Source: Epithemia pelagica (Eukaryota > Protista > Bacillariophyta). From it: a stretch of DNA of 64,000 nucleotides. The notes beneath the pieces are model-generated. The model saw nothing but the letters and a program-made list of their open reading frames with translations. It did no database searches and was not told the origin of the DNA. The position numbers and the translations under genes are program-made. The stretch spans positions 1-64,000 of the forward strand of contig OX337236.1 of assembly GCA_946965045.2 (NCBI GenBank), read 5' to 3'. This document shows positions 1 through 48,455 of the stretch, one piece after another. The number at the start of each line of letters is the position of its first letter. Within the stretch, counting starts at the first letter, position 1.

Positions 1-526
1 CCCTAACCCTAACCCTAACCCTAACCCTAACCCTAACCCTAACCCTAACCCTAACCCTAACCCTAACCCTAACCCTAACCCTAACCCTAACCCTAACCCT
101 AACCCTAACCCTAACCCTAACCCTAACCCTAACCCTAACCCTAACCCTAACCCTAACCCTAACCCTAACCCTAACCCTAACCCTAACCCTAACCCTAACC
201 CTAACCCTAACCCTAACCCTAACCCTAACCCTAACCCTAACCCTAACCCTAACCCTAACCCTAACCCTAACCCTAACCCTAACCCTAACCCTAACCCTAA
301 CCCTAACCCTAACCCTAACCCTAACCCTAACCCTAACCCTAACCCTAACCCTAACCCTAACCCTAACCCTAACCCTAACCCTAACCCTAACCCTAACCCT
401 AACCCTAACCCTAACCCTAACCCTAACCCTAACCCTAACCCTAACCCTAACCCTAACCCTAACCCTAACCCTAACCCTAACCCTAACCCTAACCCTAACC
501 CTAACCCTAACCCTAACCCTAACCCT
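1..526. repeat. Telomeric repeat array (CCCTAA)n, i.e. TTAGGG on the minus strand; left chromosome end
   Basis: 87 perfect CCCTAA units (1-522) plus CCCT, starting at base 1 of the window. Confidence 0.99.
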
Positions 527-3500
527 TGCGCATCATGTTGCACATCATCATCGCACTCAAATTCACACTCAAAACACAAGACGACAAAATCCACTACACT
601 ATACACCAAGTTCGCATAGCACGAAACACACCTTCCCACTTGATGAACAAAAATCGCAAAACATCAATAGATAAACCATTCAAATACCGTCAAGACACAC
701 CACTTGCGCATCATGTCGCACATCGACATCGCACTCAAATTCACACTCAAAACACAAGACAACAAAATCCACTACACTATACACCAAGTTCGCATAGCAC
801 GAAACACACCTTCCCACTTGATGAACAAAAATCGCAAAACATCAATAGATAGATCATTCAAATACCGTCAAGACACACCACTTGCGCATCATGTCGCACA
901 TCGACATCGCACTCAAATTCACACTCAAAACACAAGACAACAAAATCCACTACACTATACACCAAGTTCGCATAGCACGAAACACACCTTCCCACTTGAT
1001 GAACAAAAATCGCAAAACATCAATAGATAGATCATTCAAATATCGTCAAGACACACCACTTGCGCATCATGTCGCACATCATCATCCCACTCAAATTCAC
1101 ACTCAAAACACAAGACAACAAAATCCACTACACTATACACCAAGTTCGCATAGCACGAAACACACCTTCCCACTTGATGAACAAAAATCGCAAAGCATCA
1201 ATAGATAGATCATTCAAATACCTTCAAGACACACTACTTGCGCATCATGTTGCACATCATCATCGCACTCAAATTCACACTCAAAACACAAGACAACAAA
1301 ATCCACTACACTATACACCAAGTTCGCATAGCACGAAACACACCTTCCCACTTGATGAACAAAAATCGCAAAACATCAATAGATAGACCATTCAAATACC
1401 TTCAAGACACACCACTTGCGCATCATGTCGCACATCATCATCGCACTCAAATTCACACTCAAAACACAAGACAACAAAATCCACTACACTATACACCAAG
1501 TTCGCATAGCACGAAACACACCTTCCCACTTGATGAACAAAAATCGCAAAACATCAATAGATAGATCATTCAAATATCGTCAAGACACACCACTTGCGCA
1601 TCATGTTGCACATCATCATCGCACTCAAATTCACACTCAAAACACAAGACGACAAAATCCACTACACTATACACCAAGTTCGCATAGCACGAAACACACC
1701 TTCCCACTTGATGAACAAAAATCGCAAAGCATCAATAGATAGATCATTCAAATACCTTCAAGACACACTACTTGCGCATCATGTCGCACATCGACATCGC
1801 ACTCAAATTCACACTCAAAACACAAGACAACAAAATCCACTACACTATACACCAAGTTCGCACAGCACGAAACACACCTTCCCACTTGATGAACAAAAAT
1901 CGCAAAACATCAATAGATAGACCATTCAAATACCTTCAAGACACACCACTTGCGCATCATGTCGCACATCATCATCGCACTCAAATTCACACTCAAAACA
2001 CAAGACAACAAAATCCACTACACTATACACCAAGTTCGCATAGCACGAAACACACCTTCCCACTTGATGAACAAAAATCGCAAAACATCAATAGATAAAC
2101 CTTTCAAATACCTTCAAGACACACCACTTGCGCATCATGTCGCACATCGACATCGCACTCAAATTCACACTCAAAACACAAGACAACAAAATCCACTACA
2201 CTATACACCAAGTTCGCATAGCACGAAACACACCTTCCCACTTGATGAACAAAAATCGCAAAACATCAATAGATAGATCATTCCATTACCTTCAAGACAC
2301 ACCACTTGCGCATCATGTCGCACATCGACATCGCACTCAAAGTCACACTCAAAACACAAGACGACAAAATCCACTACACTATACACCAAGTTCGCATAGC
2401 ACGAAACACACCTTCCCACTTGATGAACAAAAATCGCAAAACATCAATAGATAGATGCTTCAAATATACCTTCAAGACACACCACTTACGCATCATGTCG
2501 CACATCGACATCGCACTCAAATTCACACTCAAAACACAAGACAACAAAATCCACTACACTATACACCAAGTTCGCATAGCACGAAACACACCTTCCCACT
2601 TGATGAACAAAAATCGCAAAACATCAATAGATAGATCATTCAAATACCTTCAAGACACACCACTTGCGCATCATGTCGCACATCATCATCGCACTCAAAT
2701 TCACACTCAAAACACAAGACGACAAAATCCACTACACTTTACACCAAGTTCGCATAGCACGAAACACACCTTCCCACGTGATGAACAAAAATCGCAAAGC
2801 ATCAATAGATAAACCATTCAAATACCGTCAAGACACACCACTTGCGCATCATGTCGCACATCATCATCGCACTCAAATTCACACTCAAAACACAAGACGA
2901 CAAAATCCACTACACTATACACCAAGTTCGCATAGCACGAAACACACCTTCCCACTTGATGAACAAAAATCGCAAAGCATCAATAGATAACCCATTCAAA
3001 TACCTTCAAGACACACTACTTGCGCATCATGTTGCACATCGACATCGCACTCAAATTCACACTCAAAACACAAGACAACAAAATCCACTACACTATACAC
3101 CAAGTTTGCATAGCACGAAACACACCTTCCCACTTGATGAACAAAAATCGCAAAACATCAATAGATAGACCATTCAAATACCTTCAAGACACACCACTTG
3201 CGCATCATGTCGCACATCGACATCGCACTCAAATTCACACTCAAAACACAAGACAACAAAATCCACTACACTATACACCAAGTTCGCATAGCACGAAACA
3301 CACCTTCCCACTTGATGAACAAAAATCGCAAAGCATCAATAGATAGACCATTCAAATACCGTCAAGACACACCACTTGCGCATCATGTCGCACATCGACA
3401 TCGCACTCAAATTCACACTCAAAACACAAGACAACAAAATCCACAACACTATACACCAAGTTCGCATAGCACGAAACACACCTTCCCACTTGATGAACAA

Positions 3501-3958
3501 AAATCGCAAAACATCAATAGATAGACCATTCAAATACCGTCAAGACACACCACTTGCGCATCATGTCGCACATCGACATCGCACTCAAATTCACACTCAA
3601 AACACAAGACGACAAAATCCACAACACTATACACCAAGTTCGCATAGCACGAAACACACCTTCCCACTTGATGAACAAAAATCGCAAAACATCAATAGAT
3701 AGATCATTCAAATACCGTCAAGACACACCACTTGCGCATCATGTTGCACATCATCATCGCACTCAAATTCACACTCAAAACACAAGACGACAAAATCCAC
3801 AACACTATACACCAAGTTCGCATAGCACGAAACACACCTTCCCACTTGATGAACAAAAATCGCAAAGCATCAATAGATAAACCATTCAAATACCTTCAAA
3901 ACACACCACTTGCGCATCATCTCGCACATCGACATCGCACTCAAATTCACACTCAAAA
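526..3958. repeat. Subtelomeric 178-bp tandem satellite, 19 full units plus a ~49-bp partial unit
   Basis: Units start at 526, 704, 882 ... 2306, 2486 (one unit has a 2-bp insertion), 2664 ... 3732, 3910. Consensus begins TTGCGCATCATGT(C/T)GCACATC. Top strand is A/C-rich. Confidence 0.99.
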
Positions 3959-3984: not shown

Positions 3985-6900
3985 TTATTTCGAATTTAGG
4001 CGGCCAAAAAACTGAACTATCTCCGACTGTGACCGGTAGATTTTCTTGAATGCAACGATGAAGGAACACTTTTCTTTTTCAGCATGCTCTGAAATCAATC
4101 TCTTGATTTGCTTTCGATATGGATGAGCACAAACACCACCTTTATAAGCTGGATCAAAGCAACCCAAGCATGCCTTGCGATGTGTGGCGACCCAAGTCAT
4201 GAACTCCTTTCCTTCTGGACTCACATATACGTACTTATGCCCTTGTTTTTGTTTTCGAAGTACACAAATCTCACCTCGACCATGTATACCACCACAATCA
4301 AAGCATGATCCACTTCGACAGTCAACACCGTTACACCCTGGGGTATGGCAGTAGAAACACTTTTCTCGCAATTGTCGAAGGTTTTCGTTTGCCTTTTCCT
4401 TCCAGACGTTCTCCCTTACTTGATTCTCTCGTCGTACAAGGCCATGTTCTTGCACTTCATTGAACTTGTTTCGTTGTGTTGCATATGGATTTGGAACCCG
4501 ACTTTTTTTAGCAAGTGGCTGTATAGCACCGGTAGCACATGGAATAGCTTTTTTAGACATTGTACTTGGTTCCAAGGGTGTTCTTCGGATCACATTTTGG
4601 CCACCTTGCTCAATATCTTTGGCATGTCTTTTTCGTATGCCGTCATTGTCACTGGTTGAATTTCCATCATATATCCACAGAATTCCTTTCCAGCAGTTGG
4701 TGCACCGCCCACACTGGTGTTCTGTATGATATTCGAAACAACGACAGAGGTTTGTCTTCATACATCCCTCTTTAGTCAACCACATCTTCAATCCATGCAT
4801 TGTGAAGCAGTCAGTAACACAGTCAAGGCTTTCCTCATTTGTGAGCAAACCAATTTCTCTCAGATAGTCCAAACGTCTCTTAGTCTTTACCCGGATTGCC
4901 CCATCATTGTTGAAGTCTTGAAACGGGATTAGAATATGGACAGAAGAATTATTTCCACGTTGTGACGGCCTTAGTCTTCCCATGGACTGTACAACATTTG
5001 AGCAATCATACAACATGCCAATGATCATGATTGCTCTGCATCTTTGATTCTCATTACCGACCAAGGTACAGGTCGTTCCCACAAGAATATTTGTAGTACC
5101 GTCTGCACAGGAAGATGCCACGCCATCTCTAACCTGTTGTTCACTCTCCGAAGTTAACTTCTCAACATTCAAGCCAGGATGAGATAAGCACAGTGCTTCA
5201 TAAACCTCCAAAACCATATCCTTGCTTGCACAAATCACGTGGACATGTCGCATGGTCTTCTCAGTCACAATGTCAACGACATCTGCCCCAACAGATTTTT
5301 GTACATATCTCACATGTAAGTCGAATCCATCACCAACTGGGTTCTCTCCCGAGAGATAATCCGACAATCCGTGATATGCAGAACCACTCAAATCGAGGAA
5401 GTCCATCAATTTCTGACCAAAACTCATCGAAATACTTCCAGACATCAGTGTTACGGCGACTCCAAGTGCAGATATTTCCCGTAGACAAGAATAGCATGGA
5501 CGGAAGTCGACCTCTGTAACGATGGTTTGTGCCTCATCGACAAAAATCCCATTCAACTTTCCATTGGAGCACCATCCAGAAAGTTTTGTTAGATGGTCTT
5601 TGAAGAAGGTCGCAAATCCATCGATTGTCATCACTATGACTTCGGGCAAGTCATCCCGTGCAAACCAGTTGGGCCAATTCTCATGACATAGATCGTTCTT
5701 TGCCAACATCTCGACACATAAACCATCATGCAAACCCAAAGTTTGTGATGCCTTTTCCAAGAAGGCTTTGACTTTGACCATTTGATAGCTAGCCAAGAAG
5801 TTGTAGGGCACAAGAAACATGTTGGTCGAAGTCTTCAGTCCTCGAATGGATTCCACCACACAACGCACCAAGATGTTCATGGTTTTGCCCGATCCACAAG
5901 GTTGAAGCATAAGTTTATGTCTTCCCGGTGAATTGGTGCACATATCAATTGCTGTTTCTTGATTGCCTCGGAATGTTGCTTCTTCATTACCCAACAACAA
6001 TCGTAATGCTTCTAACCGATGCTGACGGCTTGTTATTGTCAGCTGATGGCATACCGAGTCCACGATCATACATTTGGTACCGATGTAACGATGAAATCGG
6101 GCATAGTAGATCTCATGACTGTTGCTCACGCGTGTCTGGTAGTTGGACATTGCAGTCTGTTGGGAGTGCTTACTCAACTCACTCAATGCTGTTGAAGAGA
6201 CCAATGCCTGACTGTTGCTGTCTGGAAAGAGCAAGTTCACAAGAGAAGTCCAGAACTGTCGAACAACCACCGAACCAGGACGACTATCCAAGCTGAAAAT
6301 CTCTTGGGCAACATCCTCAAAGAAAAACCTCCGGTCATTACCATATTGTGGAAAAAATCTCCTTGCATTGGGCCCATTCCAAACTTTCAGCACCACAACT
6401 CTGTAGAGAAATAGACACCTTGCTATGATCCGAGGCATCTTGTGTTCAACGGGGGGTCGATCATAAGCTTGCAGTTTGGGTTGTTTACGACTCGGTGCAG
6501 AAACATATAAATCTTGGTAGTTTGTATTTTTCCACCGAAGCTGAGTCACATCGAGACAATGGACCTCTGAGAACCGATCTGCACCACAGCCAAAACCATG
6601 GATGGCAAATTCCATCAAGGCAGTTAGTCGTTCGAACTGACTTTTCACCAGTTCCTTGCATTCCAAATCTTGTGTGTTGGTACCATCTGGTAGCGATCCC
6701 AAACCGTTGGACCACTCCACAATAGTCAAGTCACCATCTAAGCAGAGGAATTTCTCGTATGCCTTTCCGACAAAGCATGCATCAAAAATACCGTGGGCCT
6801 TTTCCACAACCGTAGGAACGACCTTAGACCAAGGTGCTTTTTGGAATGCATGTCCATCAACAATGATATTGAAGAACTCATCGACCACAACCTCCCTTTT

Positions 6901-8250
6901 AGGAGGCTTCTCTTGATATTGCTTCCTCAAAGAATAAATCTTAGGACAGAGAAAGTGTATTGTATGACAATGTCTGTACCGTTCCATGACCTGCTCGACC
7001 AACTTGCCCTGCCCATCGTAGTATTTTAAGCCAGCCGCAACCCCACAGCGAAGCAGATGTAAAAGGTCAGCTAGAAAGAGATGAAAGAAGACATGAGATT
7101 TGAACAACCAAGTATATTCATTGACAGGGGGAAAGGGGGACTCACCAAGTTCTTGAGCGGCAACTCCACATGATTTCAACCTCAAGCCATTCTTCGTCTT
7201 AGTGAACAACCTCTGCCGAGAGAACAGTAACACTACCCCTGAGTCGGACCAACAAGAAATCTCACTGTCGAGTACCAACTCTGTCAGGAGTGACCCAAGA
7301 ACACAATTTTGGAATGCAGTGTCCACAGAGAATCCATCACCTTCAACCTGGCAGCAAAAATAGTTCCATCTCTTCCACTGCCTCTGATGCAGGAAACACA
7401 AGAGAGAGAGGAGTAGAGGTTTCACTCGTTTGTCATAATCATGTCGATGGCTGAAATTCCATGAGTGATCCACATCACCATCATGGAAAGCAAACTTAGC
7501 AATCCGACTCCGAATGTCTGCTGGAATCCCCATTACGATCGAAGCCATCCTGTCCAGAAGGTAACAACCAACCTGATAGAGTCGGTTGATTGCAGTGTTA
7601 TTTCCTCTCTTATGATACTCGGCTTCAAACATAATTCCTTGTTCAATGTCTCCAAGGGCATTCTCCAACGTGCCAGGAATCATATTACTCAGTACATTGG
7701 GCCACCTTCCCAAAGTATCGCTTGGATGCAATAATGGTTCAATCGAACTTGCAAACTCGTTGGGTAACCTGCTGCAGGGCAGCGGCATGGTAAATGTTGA
7801 ATTCTCAACTTGAATTATTGGGGTCCAGTTGGTTTCTTGCTGCATGGTTTCTCTTTGGGGCCTTGGCATGAAGCATCCACACTTCAGCTTGTGGAAGGTC
7901 TTCGGAATCACTTCAGCATTGTTGCAACAACCAGCAGTGTGCTTCTCGCACAAAAGCTTCTTGTGAAACATCTTGTCACAGTGACCACAGAAATACTTGA
8001 TATCTGTTTCCTTGGACTCGTGTATGAAACAATCAAACGGTTGGTTGTTGGCATTCTCCACCAAGTCGTGTATCTTTTTTCCAAGATGTCTTCCAGGGAA
8101 CCGAAATGACACTGCATGAACCTCAGAGCAAGTCTTGGCGTGACGAGCAAGGCACTTCATGTTTGCTCGGAAACCAACACCACAGAGTTTACAGACCAAG
8201 CCACAGGGTGTGGCAAAGTCCACAAGCCCCAAGTAATCGTCAAACTCCAT
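3985..8250 (-). CDS. Telomere-linked helicase (TLH-like): N-terminal Zn fingers + tyrosine-recombinase-like domain + RecQ-like SF2 helicase + RQC-like Zn site + C-terminal Cys cluster; ~1396 aa after removing one predicted 75-nt intron (7071-7145)
   Basis: Open ORF 3985-8277; first ATG at 8250 in gccaccATGg context. Zn fingers CKLC..RHAKTC..H and CGHC..CEKHTAGC. YR-like residues GADRFSEV, SRKQ, VVVRQFW, SKHSQQTAMSNY. Helicase motifs FRGNQETAI, PCGSGKT, FVDEAQ, DFRPCY, QSMGRLR, then C..CGRCTNC. An in-frame GTGAGT...TTTCTAG intron is visible. Confidence 0.9.
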   Translation of the reverse strand: MEFDDYLGLVDFATPCGLVCKLCGVGFRANMKCLARHAKTCSEVHAVSFRFPGRHLGKKIHDLVENANNQPFDCFIHESKETDIKYFCGHCDKMFHKKLLCEKHTAGCCNNAEVIPKTFHKLKCGCFMPRPQRETMQQETNWTPIIQVENSTFTMPLPCSRLPNEFASSIEPLLHPSDTLGRWPNVLSNMIPGTLENALGDIEQGIMFEAEYHKRGNNTAINRLYQVGCYLLDRMASIVMGIPADIRSRIAKFAFHDGDVDHSWNFSHRHDYDKRVKPLLLSLLCFLHQRQWKRWNYFCCQVEGDGFSVDTAFQNCVLGSLLTELVLDSEISCWSDSGVVLLFSRQRLFTKTKNGLRLKSCGVAAQELGESPFPPVNEYTWLFKSHVFFHLFLADLLHLLRCGVAAGLKYYDGQGKLVEQVMERYRHCHTIHFLCPKIYSLRKQYQEKPPKREVVVDEFFNIIVDGHAFQKAPWSKVVPTVVEKAHGIFDACFVGKAYEKFLCLDGDLTIVEWSNGLGSLPDGTNTQDLECKELVKSQFERLTALMEFAIHGFGCGADRFSEVHCLDVTQLRWKNTNYQDLYVSAPSRKQPKLQAYDRPPVEHKMPRIIARCLFLYRVVVLKVWNGPNARRFFPQYGNDRRFFFEDVAQEIFSLDSRPGSVVVRQFWTSLVNLLFPDSNSQALVSSTALSELSKHSQQTAMSNYQTRVSNSHEIYYARFHRYIGTKCMIVDSVCHQLTITSRQHRLEALRLLLGNEEATFRGNQETAIDMCTNSPGRHKLMLQPCGSGKTMNILVRCVVESIRGLKTSTNMFLVPYNFLASYQMVKVKAFLEKASQTLGLHDGLCVEMLAKNDLCHENWPNWFARDDLPEVIVMTIDGFATFFKDHLTKLSGWCSNGKLNGIFVDEAQTIVTEVDFRPCYSCLREISALGVAVTLMSGSISMSFGQKLMDFLDLSGSAYHGLSDYLSGENPVGDGFDLHVRYVQKSVGADVVDIVTEKTMRHVHVICASKDMVLEVYEALCLSHPGLNVEKLTSESEQQVRDGVASSCADGTTNILVGTTCTLVGNENQRCRAIMIIGMLYDCSNVVQSMGRLRPSQRGNNSSVHILIPFQDFNNDGAIRVKTKRRLDYLREIGLLTNEESLDCVTDCFTMHGLKMWLTKEGCMKTNLCRCFEYHTEHQCGRCTNCWKGILWIYDGNSTSDNDGIRKRHAKDIEQGGQNVIRRTPLEPSTMSKKAIPCATGAIQPLAKKSRVPNPYATQRNKFNEVQEHGLVRRENQVRENVWKEKANENLRQLREKCFYCHTPGCNGVDCRSGSCFDCGGIHGRGEICVLRKQKQGHKYVYVSPEGKEFMTWVATHRKACLGCFDPAYKGGVCAHPYRKQIKRLISEHAEKEKCSFIVAFKKIYRSQSEIVQFFGRLNSK

Positions 8251-8316
8251 GGTGGCTGTTGTCGTTCCTATGGTCAAAATAGGTTTGGGACGTATGACCC
8301 TTTGCAGCCAAAAAAG

Positions 8317-8386
8317 AGGCCCTAAAGAGGGTCATTCACCTCAAAAACTGAAAAGGCCCTAACACCAGAGATCATTCACCTCAAAA
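8317..8386. repeat. Two ~37-bp degenerate repeats AGGCCCTAA...TCATTCACCTCAAAA, each containing a CCCTAA hexamer
   Basis: aggccctaaagagggtcattcacctcaaaa (8317) and aggccctaacaccagagatcattcacctcaaaa (8354); related motifs at 13344 and 13401. Confidence 0.75.
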
Positions 8387-8440
8387 TCTTTGAGCGACAA
8401 GAAGGAATATGGTTTACTATGGAGAGTTAATGTAGGTTCT

Positions 8441-8590
8441 GAAATCGACCTTTTTCCGGTCGAAATCGACCTTTTTCCGGTCGCACTAAATATAGCACGC
8501 AGCAATACAGTGATTTGAAATCGACCTTTTTCCGGTCGCGCATGTGATTCTACAGAGTGAACTTAGTGCGCACCGGAAAAAGGTCAATTC
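8441..8590. repeat. Cluster of a 21-bp motif GAAATCGACCTTTTTCCGGTC: three direct copies plus one inverted copy (hairpin/MITE-like)
   Basis: Direct copies at 8441, 8462, 8517. Inverted copy ttagtgcgcaccggaaaaaggtcaattc (8563-8590) pairs with 8462-8489. Confidence 0.85.
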
Positions 8591-8614
8591 CTAGCAAAAC
8601 TATTAGGATCTGAC

Positions 8615-11600
8615 ATGCGCATCCTTGCCAAAACCGGACGTCATATTACCATCGTAGGTATTGACAATCATGAATTGACTGGCCTTCCAGTTGTTACCTG
8701 TGCTGCCAAGTTTGATACAAGTGATGGACCCATTATTGGTATCTTCAATGAGTATGCCCACTATGGAAAGGGTTTATCTATCCATGCCCCAGCGCAATTT
8801 GAACATTTCGGCCTATCTGTCGACGAACAATCCGTCAAGGTTGATGGCAAACAACGCATTACTACCCTTGATGGACGTGCATTGCCCTTACGAATCAAGG
8901 ATGGCCTTGCATACATTCAATCTCTGGGAATCCCTTCTGATGACGATATGGATAAATATCCGCATATTGTGTTCACTTCACCCCATATCTGGGATCCTTC
9001 TGTACTTGACCATACCCATCCAGACCCCCATCAAGACCCTGCACCGAACTGGACATCTGTGGAGACTGATGGTAGTATGGAAACGTACCCCTATGACCAA
9101 TATGGGGAGTATACCGATCGCGTTGTATGTACTTTGAATCTCCTCCTTGATCTCCCATATGATCATGGCCCCGATACACCTTCCTTCTTTTCCATCTATG
9201 CTGATCAAGATGGCAACGACCCCACACTTCATGCGTCTGTCCACAAACTCTACAAGGAACAATACGACTGGAAGAAATTTCGCCCTTTCTTTGGGTGGCA
9301 ATCGGAAGACGTAATCGCCGATACGTTCAAGCATACAACTCGTCATGGACACATTTCCTTTGACCAGGATACCTTGAAGAAACATTTTAAGGCCCGGAAT
9401 CCTATCCTTAACCTACCACGACGGCATGAACCCGTTGCCACTGACTCCATCTTCTCCGACACCCCGGCTGTTAACCATGGTGGCAAGATTGCTCAGATTT
9501 TTGTTGGTCGTGATACTTTGGTTACTGACATTTATGGTATCAAGTCTACCAAGCAATTCGTCAATACCCTCCAGGATAACATTCGCACACGTGGTGTCAT
9601 GGAGACTTTGATCAGTGATGGTGGTTCGTCACTTATTTCCCACAAGGTCAAGGATATTCTTTGCACCCTTCTGATTGGTGAATACCGTTCCGAGCCCTAT
9701 CATCAACACCAGAACAAAGCTGAGAACCGCTACCAGACCGTTAAGCGTATGACCAATGCTATCATGAATGCCTCTGGTTGCCCTGCTTCTGCATGGTTAC
9801 TTTGTTTAGAATATGTGTGTGACCTCCTCAATCACACTTCCTCTCCCACCCACTCTGGCCGCACCCCTCTTGAGGCTCTTACCGGTACCCCACCCGACAT
9901 TACCCATCTCCTTTTCTTTCCTTTCTGGGATGAGGTCTACTATCGTGTCGACCCTTCTGAACCTACCTCCGGTTCTTACCCTTCGTCTCCCGACGAGAAG
10001 CTTGGCCACTGGGTTGGTTTTGCCCACAATGTTGGTGATGCCTTTACTTGGAAGATCCTCACTGCCGACAACGTCATCATCTACCGTTCCGCTGTCCGTC
10101 GCGTTGCCTCCACTACCCCCAACCTTCGTGTGGATATCTCTTCAGGGGAGGAGTCGCCGCATAAACCCACTGACAAGCAAGGTGACACTGTCTTTATTCG
10201 CAGCAGAAGTGAAGACCCATCCACACCTATGCCAACAATTGACTACGACGATTTAGTTGGACGCACATTCCTTTGTGACACTGAAGAGAATGGGGAGCGC
10301 CACCGAGCACGAGTAATCAAACGAGTTGTCGACCTGGAACAAGATGCAACCAAACAAGAAGATCTACTCAAATATATCTTTCGCAAGTCTAACTCCAATG
10401 TTGATGAGATGATCTCCTACAACCAGCTCATGGAATACATTGAAAGGGATAATCAAGCCCAAACGACAGGGGATAGTCTCTTCTGATTCAGAGACGTTAT
10501 TGCACACCAAGGACCTTTGAACTCAAGCGACCCAGACTATAAAGGGAGTAAATATAATGTCCTTGTTGATTGGGAGACTGGGGAGACGACAAACGAACCT
10601 CTATCTCTTATTGCAAATGATGACCCCATCACAGTCGCCATCTATGCCAAGAAAAATGGTTTGCTGGATCTACCTGGATGGAAACATCTCAAGCGATACG
10701 TCAAGACAAGCAAAAGACTCATTCGAGCAGCTAAACAATCCAGGATCAAACAAATTCGTCGCTCTATCAAGTACAAGTTTGGTTTCCAAGTACCTCGCAC
10801 CTATGAAGAAGCAGTGGAACTAGACAAGCAATTTGGGAACACGAAATGGCAAGACACAACAGAATTGGAACTCTCACAGATCCAATCGTATAACACTTTC
10901 AAGGACCATGGAAAAGCCAAGTTCATTAATGGGAAATTGGCCAATGCACCAGAAGGATATCATAAGATAAGAGTACATCTGGTCTTTGATGTCAAGCATG
11001 TTGGAAGGCACAAGGCACGACTTGTCGCAGATGCACATCTTACCAAGGAACCCGTTGAGACCATCTATTCAGGGGTTGTCTCCATTCGCAACCTTCGCGT
11101 TGCCATATTTCTTGGAACCATGAACGACATGGAAATATGGGGAGCAGATATTAGGAATGCATACCTAGAAGCATTGACAGGAGAGAAGATTTTCATCATT
11201 GCAGGACCAGAGTTCAAGGAGTTAGAAGGACATATCTTGATCATCTACAAGGCATTATATGGTCTCAAATCCTCAGGTGCTCGCTGGCATGACAAACTGT
11301 TTGATGTCCTCATTGATATGGGATTTTCTCCAAGCAAGGCTGACCCTGATATTTGGATGAAGAAGGCTCCTGGAGAAGACTGTTATGAATATATCGCTGT
11401 ATATGTTGATGACTTAGCTATCGTTGCCATGGACCCTGAAGTTGTCTGCAAGATCTTTACAGAAAAATACAACTTCAAACTCAAATGAGTCGGACCTATC
11501 GAGTATCATTTGGGGTGTCGTTATACCAAAGATCCAGACGGTACACTTGTGTCTGACCCACGAAGGTACATCGAGAAGATGATGGATACCTATGAACGAT

Positions 11601-12529
11601 TGTTCAATGAGAAACCCAAGAAAGCAAAGCCGCCAGTCATTGCTAACGATCATCCTGAACTCGATGACTCTGAGCTCTTAGATGAAGAAGGGACCCAGCA
11701 TTTCCAGACTCTTATTGGACAACTGCAATGGCTAATTACCATTGGCCGTTTTGATGTCTTTCCTGCTACCATGACTCTATCAAGGTTCAGAGCTGCTCCA
11801 AGGATTGGTCATTTGAAGCAAGCTAAACGCATCTATGGATACCTCATGTCATTTCCTGATGGGTCTATCAGATTCCGCACTGGGGAGCCAGATTTATCAG
11901 CTTTACCTATCCAAGAATACGATTGGAGTCGTACCGTATACATGGACGCCAAGGAACGTATCCCTGAGGACTGTCCAACCCCACTTGGACGTTTTGTGAC
12001 AACTATACATTATGTCGACGCAAATCTCATGCATGATATGGTTACTGGGAAAGCAGTTACAGCCATCCTGCATTTTGTAAATGGTACACCCGTGGACTGG
12101 TACAGTAAGCGACAAGCCACAGTGGAAGCAGCCACGTATGGATCTGAATTTGTTGCCGCAAGGACTGCAGTTGATCAGATCACGGAGCTACGCCTTACAC
12201 TCCGATACTTGGGAGTCCCTCTGCGAGAGAAGAGTTACATGTTTGGAGATAACCGCTCTGTCGTTATCAATAGCACCGCACCACACTCAATCATCTCCAA
12301 GAGGCACCATCTCCTATCCTATCACCGAGTCCGTGAAGCTATCGCTGCAAAGTACGTCGCATTCTACTGGAAAGATGGAAAGACAAACCCAGCTGATATT
12401 CTCAGTAAACATTGGGAATTCGCCGCAGTTTGGCCCATGCTCAGATCTTTGTTATTCTGGAGAGGAAAAATCCAGGAAAGTGATGAGGGAATTGACAATC
12501 CTCATTCGACAAATTGTGGGGAGTGTTAG
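8615..12529 (+). pseudogene. pol: copia pol (integrase-RT-RNase H) interrupted by two in-frame TGA stops at 10484-10486 and 11486-11488
   Basis: ORFs 8615-10486, 10517-11488 and 11510-12529 share one frame. Sequence reads LF*FRDVIAHQGP and KLK*VGPIEYHLG across the stops. Confidence 0.9.
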
Positions 12530-13253: not shown

Positions 13254-13520
13254 CTACCAAGGAATCCATATGCAAAGAAAGCATTCAAGTAGATAGTATT
13301 AAGTTAGTAGTTACAATGTGTCGGGTTAAAGACCATCATCAAAAGGCCCATAGAGGAGTCATCTCACAAAAAATCTAATCACGTCTCACAAAAAAATATT
13401 AGGCCCAAAGAAGGGTCATTTCACACAAAAATCTGACCCAGTCACACTTGTAGTGACGGGAAATGAAACTAGTCGAGCAAAGACTAACTAATAAGCATGG
13501 GCATAGGTATGACTAGAATA

Positions 13521-13651
13521 GGGCTGTTCTAGTGGGCTGTTCTGCAGTGGGACAGCAGGCTGTTCTGCAGTGGGACAGGGCACTTCTGCAGTGGGACAGA
13601 GGGCGGTTCTGCAGTGGGACAAGTGGGATGGGGGCTGTTCTGCAGTGGGAC
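13521..13651. repeat. Minisatellite-like array of TTCTGCAGTGGGAC (5 copies, 21-31 bp spacing)
   Basis: Copies at 13540, 13563, 13584, 13607, 13638. Confidence 0.9.
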
Positions 13652-13690
13652 GCTAGAGTCTACGTAGGCCTACGGACAGGCACTTTCTCC

Positions 13691-13968
13691 TTAGGGTCTT
13701 CTTGCAAAATTTGCTCAAGGGACTGTTTTCTTGCAACAAGGAGTCGGTTGTCAGTTGCTGAGACACAGACTCCATGTTGATTTAGATGCCGCTACATGGA
13801 CCAAAGACTTTCTCCGAATGACTTCTTGCATATGCCGCATCCCATACCAAAGGGTGTCACAATTGTAGCATCTAAACATGACAAGCCAATGCCCTGATCG
13901 GAACGGATCTTCTTCACAGGCCGTCTCCGGGATGGAGATGGCGTTCCAGGCCCATTGTTGGTAGCCAT
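13691..13968 (-). pseudogene. Truncated C2H2 Zn-finger relic resembling the N-terminus of the telomere-linked helicase
   Basis: ATG at 13968 gives MATNN...TPFGMGCGICKKSFGESLWSM*RHLNQH, versus TPCGLVCKLCGVGF...LARHAKTC in the intact gene. It has an in-frame TAG and runs into the 42-bp repeat at a CCCTAA hexamer. Confidence 0.55.
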
Positions 13969-14085
13969 TGCTGGTTTCCTCGTGTGCATGGAACAGAGGA
14001 AGAGACATAACCAGCCGACTCTCAAGCAAAAGCAAGGATGGGCCTCTTTGCAAGAGTCATAATTCATGAAACAACAATGACCTTT

Positions 14086-14434
14086 TGTTGGGCCAATTGA
14101 GGTTTTCAGGTGAAGATGTTGGGCCAATTGAGGTTTTCAGGTGAAGATGTTTGGCGCGAAGGGGCACGCAGGCGACCTTTTCGCGCCAAAGAATGGGGGA
14201 ACAACTAAGAGTGCGGTAATGGTTAGTAATGAATGAAATTAAGGACTCATATTGAATATGTAATGAATGAAATTAAGGACTCATATTGAATATGAGTGCT
14301 TAGAAATTAGACTTGAGCGGGGCATAGACATTCTGTGCTCATGTGCACAAGGGGCAGTGCTCTTTTGCAACAAAAGGCATATATATCAGTGCTCATATGC
14401 ACAGATACTATAGCCCCTTGTGCTCATATGCACA
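14086..14434. repeat. Two perfect tandem duplications (31 bp x2 at 14086-14147; 34 bp x2 at 14226-14293) and a GTGCTCATATGCACA direct/inverted cluster (14334-14434)
   Basis: Read directly from the sequence. tgtgctcatgtgcacaagggg (14334) pairs imperfectly with ccccttgtgctcatatgcaca (14414). Confidence 0.85.
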
Positions 14435-17333
14435 CGTTCAAATCCTACGGTGTCTAGTACCCAAAAAAGGCAAATATCCTTAGGCAACGAAGAAGAGTCT
14501 ACGTAGGCCTACGGACAGGCACTTTCTCCTTAGGGCAGAGAAGCTCGCGACTGATCAGTCCGTGACCATGTCAGCACCGTTTGTTGGTGAGAATGACGAC
14601 GACAGTGCGATCGAGACATGAGTATTGTTGCGCCAATGGGAGTGTGGTTGGACGTTCCCCGAGGAATCTACCATAAACTACCCATGCAATGAATACATTT
14701 CATGACAAGGGGAGATTCTTGATTCACCCTGCTTGGATTCGACAGTCAGTAGCGTCCCTCACGAGCCATCATTGGTCTTTGCAGGCGGCCATTGCTGTTG
14801 GAATGACATTCTATTATATGCTGGAGTCTGTTCCATGTCCTTTCCCTTGTCACCGTGCTTGGTTTCGACAGTATAGGCTCCATAACGAGCCATTGGTGTC
14901 ACACCGCCACTTGGGATGATCCTTCTATAGCTGCATTTCGTGGCGATCTTTGCCGAGGAGGAGCATCAACACACGAGTCGTTGGTGTAGGTCGTCGTCCA
15001 TCGTGATTCGTGATTTGTCCTGTCTTGTTGCAGTTATTTCGTCCAACATAGACGGCCTCTTCTTCTTCTCTTCTTCTGTTTCTTCTCTTCTTTGTGTCAT
15101 TCCTATCGGCCGTATCGGGTGCTGTAATAATAGGCGTATCGAACAGGCACATGGTGTCAATACAAAAGATAATTTCTTCCAATGTGTCTCCACACGCCAC
15201 GTGGAAGGGATTCGGGGCAAAAGATACCTTTCCAGAGTTCCTCGCGTTTCACAATCCATTTTCTTGTCGGAGTCACAAGATTCTAAAGCCTTTCACGAAT
15301 CCACCGCTGAGAAGTAAAAACGAGGCAAAGTATCTTTTTGTGATGGCTGCCACACCAAATCGACGACGATTTGACATCGACGAGAGATGGGGCTGCCAAA
15401 CTTGATCAACACCAAAGGGAGACTTGCAAGAGAGCTTGCATGGAGCCGCAAGTTCAAGTGGAGAAGGACAACTTACAACTTGTATTGAAAAGCAAGAAGC
15501 GCAAGGTGTGAAAAACTCCCGGTATCGGAGCACTGTATATCGAGTGCTGCAATTATAGGTTTATCGAAGAGACACATCATGGTGTCAATACAAACGTGGA
15601 ACAAGGCATTCGGGGCAAAAGATACCCTTCCAGTTCATTCCTCGCGTTTCACATTCCTCTGTGGTTGGGCATGTCGCAGCACTTCCATGGTCGTTTTCGC
15701 CTTGCTCTGTGATAGCCACAGGAAAGTGGGTACTTTGCACTCTGCAATTGTTCTTGTGGATCCCTAGGGACTGATCTGACGACGATGTGGAGACGTGTCT
15801 CTCTTGGCGTTGGACTATTATGTGGGAGGTGCTCCTACAGCCCAGTATCATCGTCTACCAAGTCCTGGTCATGGCAGCCAATCACTAAATGTCTAATGCA
15901 TGAAACGCAGCATCAAGTGTCGCAGTAGCAGCTCAAGCCAGGAAAGAAACCACAATGGAATCCCATGACAAAAGTACAACAACCAAACCGCATTTGTCGT
16001 TGTCACACTGGACGAAAGAAGAACGCAATACTCAACGGGTCGCATCGCCCTTTCAAGTGTACATACGAAGATTCAAGCTGGGTGTTGGTGTGGAACGACA
16101 AGGCAGCAACACAAGCCAGAATTCAGCGAAGAAGAAGAACAATAACAACAAGTTCTAGTAGACTACAGCCAAGACATGATCGGCGCCATTCGTGGTCCTG
16201 GTTTTGTTGTTGGTACTGCTGAGTTCGGTACGAGGCTCAAATGCGGTAGGGATCGAGGTCCACCACTGCTATTAGACGACAGCCAAGGCATGATCGGCGC
16301 GGGTAGTGGTTTTGTTGGTGCTGTACGAGGCACAAAGGTTGTACTGGTCAATGTCCAATACTGCTGTTAGACATTGTTGTAATCGTGCAACAAGGTTTCG
16401 GCGGAACCGGCATTGAGAGGCAAGACATAACTTTTCGCACTGCGATTGTTCTTGTTGATACCCATGGACCGATACCCATGGACTGTTAAAGAGCCACTAC
16501 TAAGAGTGGGATTGCTGGATCGACGCATGCAAATTGCCTACCTCGTGATCAAGAATAATTGCTGTATTGGAGGAAATATCGAACATGTCGGTGGCAAAAA
16601 TTGCAAAGGGTTCTGTCACCCAAAACCACAAGCATTGAGAGAAGGGGTACTGTCCTCTCAAGCAGGCATGGGCCATAGAAGGACTGGACCCCACAATTGA
16701 AATTGAACGCATGGTCGGAAGAAGACGACTGTCCAAACGAGTCGCTGCGCCATGGTGTTTCAGGCACGCAACCATAATCTTCCACAGCGAAATAACACGA
16801 CCCATTCAACAGCAGAGAGACATGGTACCATGGACATCTACCCGAGGCCTGGCTCCACTCCTGTTTTTGGTGTCATGCTGGATGGTGTAACTTTCAGTTT
16901 TTACTAGTACAACGGTGTACATGATATCTCTATAGGTCGCAATGCCATGGAGAAAACAATGCAACTACTGTTTGAGAGTAAAATGATAATGCAATAGTTC
17001 CGCTATTGTTAGGACATACATGCAATACGTTGCAAATTTCATGACTGCTGGTCGCATGATGGTGCGCCGCTGTACATTGATTGGGAGGAAGGATTCGTGA
17101 CGACAGCCAATCCATCACATGGCCGATTCCCAATCCACACGGGTGTCAGTATTCGGGTAGGCGATAAACAATTGTTCGCGTCCCTTGATGAGCCACGATT
17201 TGAGCACGATATTCGTATTCGTCGTGTCGTCATGATACAAAATACGAATCTTGTCTCCCTCGCTGGTATCACGGCTCCTTGACCAACCGGGCGAACGTGA
17301 TAACATTGGTAGTCTATGAATTCTATAGAGATT

Positions 17334-43203: not shown

Positions 43204-45581
43204 CTACCCGACGAGGTGCTGGATGGGTTCACTGAAAAATGTTGGCGTGTTTGTGGGACGGTGTTCCGAGCATCGTCGAGCGAAACTATCGTATAGTTTC
43301 TGGACACGGTCCATCTCTTTGGTCGTTGAGCCCTCACTTTTTGTCTCGGTATCGGAGTCGTCAGTATCACTGCACTCATCCAAGTCTTGCAAGTCAGCGA
43401 GATCAAACAACACCAACTGCTCTTTACCGTTTTCTTTGAAAATTCCGACATGGCGCCATCGAGCATCCCAGGTATGGTACAGTTTGCCGATCCTGTCCTT
43501 CATATTCCTGAGAGCCGATCGAACACCATCCAATCGCTTCGGTCGATCGTCGTTGGGAATGGGATCAAACATTGGCATGACGACCGCATGGTAACCACAC
43601 ATTTTGATTTGTCGGACTCGTCCTTCCAAAAAGGCGTAGCATCTCTCTAGATTTTCCTTCTCTTTACGAGCACCGGTTTCTGCGTCGTCGTCGTCCTCGT
43701 CGCCGTTCATGACTTTGATCGCAACCGGGTTTCCCATATGATCGAGCGCCTGAAAGGTGTTGGATTTGGTTCCTTGGCCGAGGCTTGCAATCACAAAATA
43801 CATCCCGTCGTTGGATGGGATGGCAGTCCCGTCTCCGTCTCGAGGTGGCTTCTTCACTTTAACATGGATCGAGTTGCCAATTGTCGCCTCCAGTGGACCC
43901 CAACGCCCGTCGCCATCACTGCCACAGATAGACAGTGCTCTGGAGAAATAGTACCTTTTCCCAATATGGAGTTTGTAGGTTTTCTTTTCGAATTTTCGGT
44001 AGGCGTTCTTGGACATCTTCAAAGCTGTATACACAAGCTTGATAAGCTCGTGAGCCTTGTAATCGTGTTTCGAAACGTAGAGCTTTGGCTCAATCAAGTT
44101 TTTCGTGAACATTCCATTTTGCTCGCAGTCCGAGCAAAATGGAATGTTCACAAAAATCTCCATAGAGCTTAACATTCTATTTTCCTCGGAATGCGAGGGT
44201 TCAAACTTTGTAGTAGAGTATGATTGAGTCTCCTTATCCAGAAAAGGCGGCGCGTCAGTATTCTCCAGGTTGGTAATTCGGACTGATGGAGATTTCTTCT
44301 TTTGGGGCGGAGATTGCGACTGCGGCGACAGGACCGATTCGCCCTTGTCCTCAATTTCCTGGTGTTCTCCTTTTTGCTTGCTGTTCTGTTGGGTCATAGC
44401 TGAACCATCCTCAATTTCCATTTCACTTTTGTCTTGGTAGCTATTAGAGTCAGGGTGGGTGAAATCATCCGCTCGTAAGGAACCGAGAAACGACTCCTCA
44501 AACAAAGTCACCAATACCATATCCGTTCCGACGTTGAATGCTTTCCTTGCCATTGCATGTTGGAACGCATGACCTACGACCTTCGCACAAGTCCTCAACT
44601 GTCGCTGCCGTGGATGCTTGACCACGATCGCAATCAACCCAACGTCATCTCGGCCACGTACTACCAACAAGTCGGCTCGACAACTAAAAAGGCTCCGTTC
44701 AAATCTTAACACAAGGCTGTCGTCTTCGAAGTACCCTTCCACGTTTAGTATTCCGATTGCGTCTTGAACAGCAAGTGAAACAAGGTTACGAATGTCAGCT
44801 TCGCTCTGGTAAGAGATGGGAGAATCCCGAAACCTTAAATAAGCGTCGACATGAATTTGTAATACGCCTCAAGATTTCGTTTCTTTAATTCCTTGATATT
44901 GGGCTCCAAAAGTTGAAAGTCTGCAATTTCGGTTGTCGTTGCCTCTTCATGGGATTGTTCGTTGGTATATCTAAAATCGCTTTTGGAGACCAAGTCAAAG
45001 TCTCCCTCTTTTGCATTCATCAACGCCTTCGGACTAATCAGCTTAGCATTGTGAAGACAAAGACGGTATCGCTCTTTTTCTATGTCCGTCATTTCTGAGT
45101 CACTGTCCGCTCCTTCTTTCAGTTTCTTGCGGGGAGGAGCTTGTTGAGCGAAGGATGCTGATTCTGCATCGGTTGGTTGACTCTGGCAATGCATGATAGA
45201 AGGAGCGCGAAGAAGAGCCTGGCGCCGAACAAGCAAACGAATCAACCCGGATAGCTGCAAAGCGTCGTTCCCGATCCCAAGACGAGACATTGCCTGGTCT
45301 TGCTCCTCCTCTGGCATCTGCCGAGCAAGCAAACGATAAAACTCTGCTTGCTGTAACGCGTAGTTTCTGATCTCAAGCCGCGACAATACATCGTCTTGCT
45401 GCTCAACTGGCATCAAAGACACTTGGTTTCGAGCCAGGAAACGAAAAAACCCTGTCAGCTGTAACGCGTCATTTCCGATCCCAAGCCGCGACATCACCTT
45501 GTCTTGCTCTTCAGCTGTCATCAACGACACTTGGTCCACGGATAGACCCATGTCGTTGAGTTTACCCGCCCAGTCCGTCAT
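43204..45581 (-). pseudogene. Crinkler-like gene, copy A: helical/SAM-like repeats + degenerate PD-(D/E)xK-like domain + kinase-like domain; one stop/frameshift near 44835
   Basis: ORFs 44835-45581 and 43204-44742 are collinear with copy B. Kinase-like motifs LGQGTKSNTF, VAIK, KEKEN, WDARWRHVG, LFDL. REase-like RADLLVV...IAIVVKHP. Confidence 0.65.
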
Positions 45582-46529
45582 GTCTGCACAGTATACTATA
45601 GTTAGACAATACTATACAGCGAATATATCGTTCGTTCCGTTCGGCGCAGTCTCCGGCGACGCCGTGTGTGGGTGTGGCATCCAACGCGTGGTTGCGGCAA
45701 AACCTGAGTTGATCCAGAGGACCGATACACAAGGATCGAACGCATCTCCATCGCTCGTCGCCGAGGTGATAAAAGAACTGGAGGATGGGTCGCGCATAAA
45801 ATGCATGGCATAATTTCTCGTAGTAGTTATAAGGACGGGGTGGAACCATTGAAACTCCAAATTTTCTCCCCCCCCAGAACAGCTATTTTACAATAGCGAA
45901 AACAGACCCCCCGGGAAATTCTGGCAGAGGCAAGAACGCTTGCCACATTGCTGGCGTAGCGGGAAAGAAAAGTTTGAAATTGAAATTTTCAGACTAGGGT
46001 GATCATGAGAAAAAGGGATACCGGTCAATTAACGTACAAAACAAATTGACGGGGCTAGAAGGAAAAAATAACAAGGGAGGGGTGAAAAAATCGGCTAGTA
46101 TCGATGTCACTGACTGTTTTGGGGGTATGCTGTAAGACTACATGTAGCAGAGAGATAAATTTTTTGAATATCGTGTCGCAATTATCCGGATTTCCACTGA
46201 AATCCTGTAAAACCAGGATTACCCGGTATTTTTGATTATCAAGCCGGAACTACGGACTACGGAGAGACTGCCTCCACCCCCAATATGTCATCATCGAACC
46301 CCAGCTTTGGTCCTTCTCCATTGCCAAAAAAGTGGCGATGAGAAAGAGACAGCAGCAAACAACACAAACGAGATTAATACCATAGGTATAGAAAGCGGCA
46401 GGATTGACCGTGGCACTGCAATCCCTGGAAAGGAGACTCTACTTTAGAGATGCAACGGATTCCCATCCTCAGGCAACAATCATAGAGTCCAAATGAAAAA
46501 GCAAACAGGAGAACTAATAATATTCGTAC

Positions 46530-48455
46530 ATGTACAACCAGAGCATGGGTTTCTTTGACACGGACGCTTCGGACGACGACGAGGACGTGACGAAAAACCG
46601 GCCATTGCCTCCTTTGGAATCCTTTCTGATGGAAAATGACAATTCCAATGACAAAGCGACGGAACCACGCCTGAATCCACCAGAAAAGGAGAAACCACAA
46701 GACGACGAAGAGGAGGAAGAAGAAGATCCATTGGATGCCTACATGAAGACTCTGAATCACGCTGACAAATCTCCCACCAAGACAAGCTCAACTGTCGTCA
46801 AGAGGAAATGGCAAGACGACGACAACGAAGAGGAAAACGAGCTGGAATCTTCTATTTCAAACAAGCACAAACGAAATCGTTCCGATCCATCCTCTCCGGG
46901 CCAGCATGCTCCAAGCGGCTCGACCGACTCGTCGACACAACAACAACAACAACAACTCCAACCCAAAACTCCATGGCCCGAATTTCCCAAAGTCTTTTGG
47001 ACACCCAGCAACACTCCAAAAGGACGAGAATGGAGAATGAATCAGGATATTACTTGTACCATTGACATGGATCCCATGTACGACTTGTCCGAATTGGAAC
47101 CACTCTGGGGCCCAAACGTTCACGAGACGCTTTCCCAACAGGGGTATCACACACCCACATTGGTGCAATCGCAAACCATTCCGGTCGTACTGTCCGGTCA
47201 CAATGTCGTCGTCACCGCTGCGACCGGACAAGGCAAAACTGGAGCCTATCTGTGGCCCGTAATGGTACACATGCTCCATCAATCTCCACTCCATACAAAC
47301 GAAACCGGGCCCTTGGCCTTGGTTGTCGTTCCGACTCGAGAATTGGCCCACCAAGTCCATGGTCACGCCAAGAAATTACTAGCCGCGTGTGGTGAGGAAC
47401 CACGACGACGACGAGCCCATGTCGTCGTTGGAGGACAGGGCAAGTACTTGTTGCATCAACAATTGAAACGTCAGGGCGGCGTCGACGTGGTTGTCGCCAC
47501 ACCCGGTCGACTGCTCGATGTCGTGTCGGATAAAAAGGGGTTGAGTTTGAACCGTGTCACTGTGCTTGTCTTGGACGAGGCGGACAAATTGTTGGACATG
47601 GGCTTTGAAGCGCAAGTTCGACAACTTTTGACGCAACACATACGACCAGATCGACAAACTCTCTTGTGTTCGGCCACGTGGAGTCGTCGAGTCCAACGGG
47701 TGGCGACGGAATGGATGGGACGGCACTGGGTCCGCATTGCCGTTGGTCGGACCGGTCACAGTGCTCGAAACGTTCAACAACAGGTCCGTGTGTTGTCCAA
47801 CGAAGCGGCCAAGGTTTCGTGGTTACTACAACTTTTTTCCATCACCACCACCACAACAGCAGCAACAACGGTTGAGACACAACAACAACCACAACAACAA
47901 CAAACCCTTGTCTTTGTCGCCACCAAGGAAGGATGCGATCGACTCGTTTCGCAACTGCAAACGGCACTTCCCACCCTGTCCGTGGCAGTGTTGCATGGGG
48001 ACAAGCATGCGTCAGACCGGACGGCTACCATCCGGGCCTTTGCCAAGGGTCGTGTCTCGACCTTGATTGCCACCGATGTCGCGAGTCGAGGATTGGATAT
48101 TCCGCGCGTCTCGACCGTCGTCAATTTTCATGCCGCCAAGAATTACGATACTCATGTCCATCGCATTGGACGTGCCGGACGATGGTCTGCTCGAGAACAG
48201 TTGTCATCCTCACAACAACAACAACAACAACAACAAGTTGGTGGAATAGCCTACACCTTGCTGACACCACACAATGCCGCCTTTGCCAACGTCCTGTTCA
48301 ACGCCTGGCAACGAGAAGGTCGACCCATTCCCCCCGAACTCATGAATCTTCTGGATCGTCCTGGAACAAGCCGCCATGGGTCTCGCAATCATAGGAGACA
48401 CGGCAGCAACCACACATCTCCTCCTCCTTCTTTCTATGGAAACGGTTCGACGTAA
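46530..48455 (+). CDS. DDX42: DEAD-box RNA helicase, DDX42-like
   Basis: EEDPLDAYM N-terminal motif; Q motif PTLVQ; ATGQGKT; PTRELA; TPGRL; DEAD; SAT; TDVASRGLD; HRIGRAGR. Orthology inferred from the N-terminus. Confidence 0.85.
   Translation: MYNQSMGFFDTDASDDDEDVTKNRPLPPLESFLMENDNSNDKATEPRLNPPEKEKPQDDEEEEEEDPLDAYMKTLNHADKSPTKTSSTVVKRKWQDDDNEEENELESSISNKHKRNRSDPSSPGQHAPSGSTDSSTQQQQQQLQPKTPWPEFPKVFWTPSNTPKGREWRMNQDITCTIDMDPMYDLSELEPLWGPNVHETLSQQGYHTPTLVQSQTIPVVLSGHNVVVTAATGQGKTGAYLWPVMVHMLHQSPLHTNETGPLALVVVPTRELAHQVHGHAKKLLAACGEEPRRRRAHVVVGGQGKYLLHQQLKRQGGVDVVVATPGRLLDVVSDKKGLSLNRVTVLVLDEADKLLDMGFEAQVRQLLTQHIRPDRQTLLCSATWSRRVQRVATEWMGRHWVRIAVGRTGHSARNVQQQVRVLSNEAAKVSWLLQLFSITTTTTAATTVETQQQPQQQQTLVFVATKEGCDRLVSQLQTALPTLSVAVLHGDKHASDRTATIRAFAKGRVSTLIATDVASRGLDIPRVSTVVNFHAAKNYDTHVHRIGRAGRWSAREQLSSSQQQQQQQQVGGIAYTLLTPHNAAFANVLFNAWQREGRPIPPELMNLLDRPGTSRHGSRNHRRHGSNHTSPPPSFYGNGST

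Follow-up and report, generated by a model that had tools for sequence, protein, structure and literature searches.

The first 64,000 nucleotides of contig OX337236.1 of the diatom Epithemia pelagica (GenBank assembly GCA_946965045.2), here called the window, start in telomere repeats, and the gene closest to them encodes a 1421-residue protein in which a RecQ-family helicase is preceded by a domain that looks related to the tyrosine recombinases. The gene belongs to a multicopy family found near chromosome ends, and is best filed as a telomere-linked helicase (TLH) element in a new lineage. Copies begin at one fixed position with a telomere-like motif and, where truncated in their 3' parts, run directly into the next copy. 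These features suggest that the element propagates itself at chromosome ends, replacing their tips through recombination at a short core sequence, a reading whose chances we put at about even; the exchange would presumably be catalysed by the element's own recombinase domain.

To our knowledge, TLH genes have been recognised at fungal chromosome ends for more than 20 years while their central domain has had no assigned function and their spread to chromosome ends no explanation. Reading the central domain as one that breaks and rejoins DNA gives a concrete and testable mechanism for that spread, and support for the mechanism comes from the fixed telomere-like 5' terminus, the short-core crossovers and the stacks of truncated copies.

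The terminal gene and its protein

Two subfamilies are distinguished below, the A-type, to which the window copy belongs, and the B-type. The features of the window that concern them, from the chromosome end inward, are:

1-526, no strand: telomere, (CCCTAA)x87.7 read inward from the chromosome end (repeat call)
525-3958, no strand: 178-bp satellite, 19.3 copies with 96% matches (tandem-repeat call)
3985-8250, minus strand: intact TLH-like open reading frame (ORF) of 1421 amino acids (aa), ATG at 8250, stop at 3985-3987
4066-4383, minus strand: C-terminal Cys/His cluster, zinc-knuckle-like and kept across the family (Cys cluster aa 1298-1395)
4681-6018, minus strand: RecQ-family helicase core (aa 745-1190)
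6001-7053, minus strand: tyrosine-recombinase-like domain, in the place of the "TLH domain" (aa 400-750)
6574-6576, 6484-6486, 6259-6261, 6166-6168 and 6139-6141, minus strand: candidate catalytic residues R559, K589, R664, H695 and Y704, respectively, from conservation
7924-8193, minus strand: two N-terminal Cys/His zinc motifs (aa 20-45 and 88-109)
8251-8610, minus strand: 5' leader of the element, where A-type homology begins
8444-8588: four copies of the 17-mer ATYGACCTTTTTCCGGT, at 8588-8572 in gene sense and at 8520-8536, 8465-8481 and 8444-8460 inverted
13693-14484, minus strand: remnant of the 5' end of a B-type element, starting at 14484 with CCTAAGGATATTTGCC

A first-pass annotation of this DNA, made from the letters alone, had described an intact, most distal gene transcribed toward the telomere, and this description holds: the ORF runs uninterrupted from 8250 to 3985 on the minus strand and follows the 19.3 satellite copies, with about 27 bp between satellite and stop codon. 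On the plus strand the satellite is poor in G (GC skew -0.5 to -0.67), and its outward-reading strand is G-rich and contains no CCC. The same 178-bp satellite lies 3' of A-type and B-type genes at other chromosome ends.

Every motif that the annotation had listed (zinc fingers, a set resembling that of tyrosine recombinases, RecQ motifs and a Cys cluster) is present where it had been placed. The central domain contains HGFGCGADRFSE (aa 551-562), VRQFWTS (663-669) and KHSQQTAMSNY (694-704). The helicase core carries motif 0 (FRGNQ, aa 760-764), Walker A (PCGSGKT, 784-790), DEAQ (905-908), an aromatic loop (DFRPCY, 915-920), motif VI and a C4 zinc-binding subdomain (zinc site 1163-1186), and the N-terminal zinc motif of the B-type paralogue is a clean Cx2Cx12Hx4H. 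Chance is an inadequate explanation for these motifs, because the catalytic-type, helicase and zinc residues are all invariant across 48 distant relatives and because alignment of the helicase with Escherichia coli RecQ by hhalign, covering the motor domains and the C4 zinc-binding subdomain, has a probability of 99.1%.

A single-sequence search against Pfam gave weak matches to DEAD and Helicase_C (aa 763-1092), and single-sequence searches of Pfam and the Protein Data Bank (PDB) otherwise returned one insignificant match of piggyBac type. A helicase profile built from 20 relatives, in turn, found RECQ5 as its best match (E 2e-22), followed by RecQ, BLM, RECQ1 and WRN. By these profile comparisons the assignment to the RecQ family, which had also been proposed earlier, appears solid. 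Motifs 0 and I-VI, the aromatic loop and the C4 subdomain align with those of canonical RecQ proteins (RECQ5, E. coli RecQ, BLM, WRN); unlike these, the diatom protein has DEAQ as motif II in the window copy and has, ahead of the helicase, long regions of recombinase-like and zinc-finger type. No HRDC domain was detected in it.

Copies at chromosome ends

The window protein is one of 20 in a cluster at 90% identity, whose members are spread over at least 10 contigs of a single assembly. On nine of nine contigs examined, copies lie 0-17 kb from the contig end and are oriented toward it, and telomere repeats were verified on two of the nine, the window and a contig (L001) that terminates in the 178-bp satellite and (GGGTTA)x54. 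The gene is thus neither single-copy nor removed from telomeres, in agreement with the telomere association first proposed for it. Another contig (L002) carries a 99% identical copy, with one premature stop, followed by the satellite. Comparison of the window copy with nine A-type paralogues gave ratios of nonsynonymous to synonymous substitution rates (dN/dS) of 0.25-0.54, which, as judged from the coding sequences, show the copies to be under purifying selection.

B-type proteins are only about 26% identical to A-type proteins and have the same architecture. Their genes are intermixed with A-type genes at the same ends, and the two subfamilies have the satellite and the terminal motif in common. 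The B-type remnant at 13693-14484 is an older layer, and the chromosome end in the window is itself layered.

One family member of L001 departs from this arrangement. It encodes 951 aa (6783-9638, minus strand), is without the N-terminal 420 residues, has a match to the CCHC zinc knuckle and lies in inverted orientation at the chromosome end; it may be a reciprocal or rearranged product.

A fixed 5' boundary and short-core junctions

The two ends of the copies differ, the 5' end being fixed and the 3' end variable. DNA homology of all A-type copies starts at 8607-8610, 357 bp upstream of the ATG, with the terminal motif CCTAA at 8607-8603 in gene sense. At A-type boundaries the sequence reads, in gene sense, (GA)CCCTAA or CCTAA and then GTTTTGCTAG, whereas B-type copies begin with CCTAAGGATATTTGCC. 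Each of 22 boundaries starts with CCTAA, 18 of them reading CCCTAA, such that one telomere unit or partial unit is found at all 22. The points of 3' truncation, in window coordinates, are scattered (5339, 5612, 5641, 5764, 6451, 7139, 7374, 7414 and 8328), and each truncated copy directly abuts the 5' boundary of the copy that follows, without any change of orientation.

In all nine junctions for which the uninterrupted recipient is known, the recipient sequence at the crossover is CCC, CCCT or CCTAA, and the crossovers share only 3-6 bases. One recipient site, GAGAAC/CCT, has served two elements, one of A-type and the other of B-type. Because the outward-reading strand of the satellite is without CCC, it would offer no target for exchanges at CCC(T).

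The leader also contains TTAGGG-like motifs, together with the 17-mer repeats. Four copies of this 17-mer stand against 0.2 expected by chance, and none is found elsewhere in the window; the 17-mers are candidate protein-binding sites.

Just proximal to the 5' boundary lies a fragment of a Copia-type reverse transcriptase (RVT_2, E 1e-20; 10517-12529, plus strand), and a 623-aa ORF without a family match (8615-10486) abuts the boundary itself; the site at which the element was joined may lie within a retrotransposon. Farther inward, a 440-bp module at 13254-13696 recurs in 98% identical repeats at other ends (L001 6379-6821, L004 and L006), where its copies adjoin B-type fragments.

Relation of the central domain to tyrosine recombinases

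Conservation was judged from 48 relatives of near-full length, whose columns average 19% identity and in which the invariant columns of the central domain are R559, K589, R664, H695, Y704 and one Gly; an alignment of 63 sequences agrees on the invariant R-K-R-H-Y set. None of the 48 relatives has lost any of the five residues. When the domain was aligned by hhalign to six bona fide recombinases (XerD, XerC, lambda Int, Cre, FimB and FimE; P=8e-4), R559, R664, H695 and Y704 fell opposite R148, R247, H270 and Y279 of XerD.

An AlphaFold2 model made from the 63-sequence alignment, with a mean predicted local distance difference test score (pLDDT) of 89.9 and a predicted template modelling score (pTM) of 0.83, replaced an earlier poor model from a shallow alignment (pLDDT 56). 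In the model a helix starts at R559, K589 occupies a beta-hairpin loop, R664 is part of a helix, and H695 and Y704 lie in the region of the last helices, the placement on secondary structure that is found in tyrosine recombinases. A Foldseek search of the PDB returned almost only Cre, XerH, Flp, XerA and topoisomerase IB, with 46 of the 50 top matches from this superfamily, and a search of viral models (BFVD) returned DNA_BRE_C proteins, poxvirus topoisomerase, integrases and VLF-1. Foldseek probabilities reached 0.97-0.99, yet E-values were 5.6e-3 or higher and template modelling (TM) scores 0.2-0.3.

It is conceivable that the central domain is unrelated to tyrosine recombinases, and that the motif and fold matches are chance resemblances in a helical domain. 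Several results pull in this direction and weigh against a recombinase. Sequence and profile searches of Pfam and the PDB with the central domain gave no match to a recombinase family, and neither Pfam Phage_integrase nor a solved recombinase was matched by sequence at E<=1 to 10. The hhalign probability against the recombinases is just 24%, and the domain lacks the His that an HxxR box usually has. Even with the better model, the best Foldseek E-values are weak (0.07 for the PDB and 5.6e-3 for BFVD), with no match at E<=0.001 and with TM-scores as low as those given above. Chance, however, would have to produce five residues whose kind, order and position on secondary-structure elements are all as expected, and keep them invariant where columns average about 19% identity; it would have to put four of them in register with XerD, draw 46 of 50 top matches from a superfamily that forms a tiny share of the PDB, and lead to the same superfamily in a separate viral library. 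We regard chance resemblance as very improbable. Because the invariant R-K-R-H-Y set, the in-register profile alignment and the Foldseek lists concur, the domain looks like a relative of the tyrosine recombinases, as judged from alignments and a predicted fold.

The fusion of a tyrosine recombinase to RecQ that had been proposed at the outset is thus secure in its RecQ part, and in its recombinase part is favoured by three lines of evidence with weak scores. In the structural check that had been suggested, the match lists are composed almost wholly of recombinases and topoisomerase IB, with poor E-values and TM-scores.

Proposed tip replacement and competing explanations

Under the preferred reading, the unit would consist of a 5' terminus, (C)CCTAA at 8607, followed by a 360-bp leader, one long gene, the 178-bp satellite and the telomere. 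Joining of the CCCTAA-like terminus to a CCC(T) site close to a different chromosome end would leave the recipient with all sequence proximal to the site and supply it with a fresh gene, satellite and telomere, and repeated replacement of the tip would build head-to-tail stacks of older 3'-truncated copies. The element's own recombinase domain would perform the exchange at the leader, where the element's protein would bind the 17-mers, in a short-core site-specific recombination like that of Cryptons, while the RecQ helicase would help by unwinding or branch-migrating telomeric DNA. The fixed donor breakpoint, the varied short-core recipient sites and the loss of distal sequence argue for tip replacement by short-core exchange, and since the encoded recombinase-like domain has kept its catalytic set intact, the exchange is most simply ascribed to this domain. 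A self-propagating end element had been suggested at the outset; the sharp common 5' boundaries, the stacked truncated copies and the CCC(T) identity at crossovers support that suggestion.

Other observations count against tip replacement by the element's own enzyme. The element has no defined 3' end, as copies either reach the telomere or stop at variable points; no circular or linear free form was seen, and no reciprocal products were traced. One family member of another organism sits 26 kb inside its contig. Furthermore, microhomology joining without any recombinase would likewise give CCC at crossovers. A cellular microhomology-mediated repair could accordingly make the junctions with no part played by the encoded recombinase domain: the CCC(T) 3' tail of a broken or eroded end would anneal to the G-rich complement of the 5' terminus, which may itself be the short telomere of a free linear copy, and the end would then be joined or extended. 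Such a route would suit the mere 3-6 bases common at crossovers and the nature of the terminal motif, one inverted telomere unit, and a relic of head-to-head telomere fusion adjoins a family member in another assembly. It fits less well with the one unit or partial unit at all 22 boundaries, as a true telomere tract would leave variable numbers of repeats; a fixed donor breakpoint requires a physical end or a specific cut at that position, and the invariant catalytic residues would be left unexplained. We consider this explanation unlikely, yet it is still a live competitor.

Alternatively, the gene could serve the host as a RecQ-type telomere-maintenance gene for failed telomeres, copied passively by homologous recombination or break-induced replication, with the recombinase-like domain doing no more than binding or processing DNA. 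A host function would fit the purifying selection seen on the copies, subtelomeres recombine freely in many organisms, and a role in telomere crisis has been proposed for tlh of Schizosaccharomyces pombe and a maintenance role for fungal genes (bioRxiv 10.1101/2024.02.27.582403; PMC1635262). Homology-driven copying, however, should restore full genes and not junctions of truncated and new copies at one donor position, and host maintenance does not readily account for two lineages of only 26% identity that coexist with the same terminal motif, or for a full catalytic set that is invariant. Moreover, ends of Magnaporthe oryzae that lack TLH are stably maintained (PMC1635262), and the presence of TLH varies among strains of Botrytis cinerea, some being without it (bioRxiv 10.1101/2022.03.07.483234). 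A host maintenance gene is therefore a rather improbable account of the family.

Three further candidates were rejected. Retroelement-type attachment primed from the G-overhang is excluded by the proximal junction, which reads CCCTAA and not TTAGGG on the outward strand, and by the fixed end being 5', whereas priming predicts a fixed 3' end. Break-induced copying as the sole cause would give no fixed donor breakpoint. An analogy with telomere resolvases (TelK, TelN, ResT and TelA), which form hairpin ends at a palindromic site, had been drawn in the first-pass annotation and was abandoned, as the ends are ordinary long arrays of the canonical TTAGGG; TelA appears only among weak Foldseek fold matches.

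Comparison with telomere-linked helicases and other elements

TLH proteins described from fungi and choanoflagellates carry a pair of C2H2 motifs near the N terminus and, immediately ahead of the RecQ helicase, a conserved "TLH domain" of about 250 residues; certain species have zinc motifs at the C terminus as well (bioRxiv 10.1101/2024.02.27.582403; bioRxiv 10.1101/2022.03.07.483234). The diatom protein has the same layout of two C2H2-type motifs, a conserved domain, a RecQ-type helicase and C-terminal zinc motifs. The TLH gene of M. oryzae is oriented with its 3' end toward the telomere, from which tandem repeats separate it; the repeats of the proximal boundary start with CCTAACC, an inverted telomere unit, and truncated copies are common (PMC1635262). 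Like TLH genes (M. oryzae TLH1, S. pombe Tlh1/2, Ustilago maydis UTASa and those of Fusarium, Botrytis and Monosiga brevicollis), the diatom gene is multicopy at chromosome ends, has a telomere-facing 3' end followed by tandem repeats, is frequently truncated and has proximal boundaries that start with an inverted telomere unit. It is by its copies at several chromosome ends, its RecQ-type helicase and its two C2H2-type motifs that the family belongs with TLH.

The diatom family differs from published TLH in its host and in having two deeply divergent subfamilies with the same ends, and its central domain, unlike in published accounts, is read here as tyrosine-recombinase-like. Likened to the fungal TLH domain by architecture and published descriptions, the diatom central domain is probably its homologue. 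The earlier suggestion needs one correction here, for the architecture is not new, being that of TLH. A search of the literature returned no paper describing TLH in diatoms. Nor did that search return a paper linking TLH to a tyrosine recombinase, and two additions, the recombinase-like central domain and the junction evidence for site-directed tip replacement, are ones that we could not find described.

A broader proposition is that the TLH domain of fungi, choanoflagellates and diatoms is an active tyrosine recombinase, that TLH elements swap chromosome tips at a telomere-like core, bringing with them RecQ, satellite and telomere, and that they form an old and widespread class of mobile elements. 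We put this forward tentatively, judging it somewhat more likely to fail than to hold. If true, TLH elements would be a so far unrecognised class of eukaryotic mobile element, and a tip-replacing element would join the short list of eukaryotic mobile elements that use a tyrosine recombinase. TLH elements would also be extended to diatoms and to hundreds of sequence clusters in environmental data, with a bearing on how subtelomeres are rebuilt after loss.

The proposed exchange is formally like that of Cryptons. CryptonF-1_cRei ends in CACCG and targets CAYCG, its terminal pentamer recombining with a near-identical target (PMC9977147). The diatom element resembles Cryptons in encoding a recombinase-like domain of this superfamily, in being without terminal inverted or long terminal repeats, and in having a short sequence common to terminus and target, here CCCTAA and CCC(T) in nine of nine junctions. 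Unlike a Crypton, it has one defined end (5'), the other being the chromosome end itself; the tip would be replaced rather than a unit inserted, and the recombinase-like domain is fused to a RecQ helicase. Cryptons are discrete two-ended units that insert and excise, and in the diatom copies the 5' end alone is fixed.

The Y' elements (Y'-Help1) are likewise subtelomeric repeats with a helicase gene that occur in tandem at chromosome ends and are amplified between ends. In Saccharomyces cerevisiae, telomere-type repeats stand between the Y' copies, which spread through homologous recombination, and we know of no recombinase domain described for them.

Relatives in other assemblies

A profile search of 1.84 billion representatives recovered 2125 proteins at E<=1e-3 and, under the stricter cut-off of E<=1e-30, 248 clusters, among them dozens of relatives of 1000-1800 aa in which both domains are covered end to end; a word-indexed homologue search found only the cluster of close paralogues. 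The relatives come from metagenomes and assemblies of sequencing runs, mostly on contigs of 5-14 kb, and are annotated at most as "RecQ". One has a 170-195-bp satellite 3' of the gene, at the contig end. Another, inside a 99.5-kb contig (L020), has a short (TTAGGG) tract about 740 bp past its stop codon; this interstitial tract (15342-15395) ends in a perfect palindrome, GTTAGGGTTAACCCTAAC, and on that pattern is read as the relic of a head-to-head telomere fusion.

The metagenome contigs of relatives (L008-L011 and L018) showed no clear termini. In one of them, a relative from a Joint Genome Institute (JGI) metagenome (L008), CCCCTAAG lies at 2505-2520, about 120 bp 5' of the ATG, with satellites on both sides; it may be the same kind of terminus, there being a single copy to judge from.

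Other features of the window

Ordinary eukaryotic genes make up the rest of the window, including UCH, Sec1, Kelch, Upf2, JmjC-type and DDX42-like genes. Among named organisms, the closest relatives of the DDX42-like protein come exclusively from diatoms (Epithemia, Amphora, Fragilaria, Fistulifera, Cyclotella, Thalassiosira and Cylindrotheca, 43-48% identity), which supports a diatom source for the window, though not one of the species matched. Tandem units of 96/108 bp occur within a pair of inverted repeats (44334-45582 and 61016-62281) that are about 1.2-1.9 kb long, 78-95% complementary and about 15.4 kb apart; the pair could represent a large transposon or an inverted gene duplication. 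The DDX42-like protein (46530-48455) has an exact match on an 850-kb contig, and an 88% identical version is found on a 1.68-Mb contig that carries the exact TLH protein, which suggests diverged haplotypes or two assemblies.

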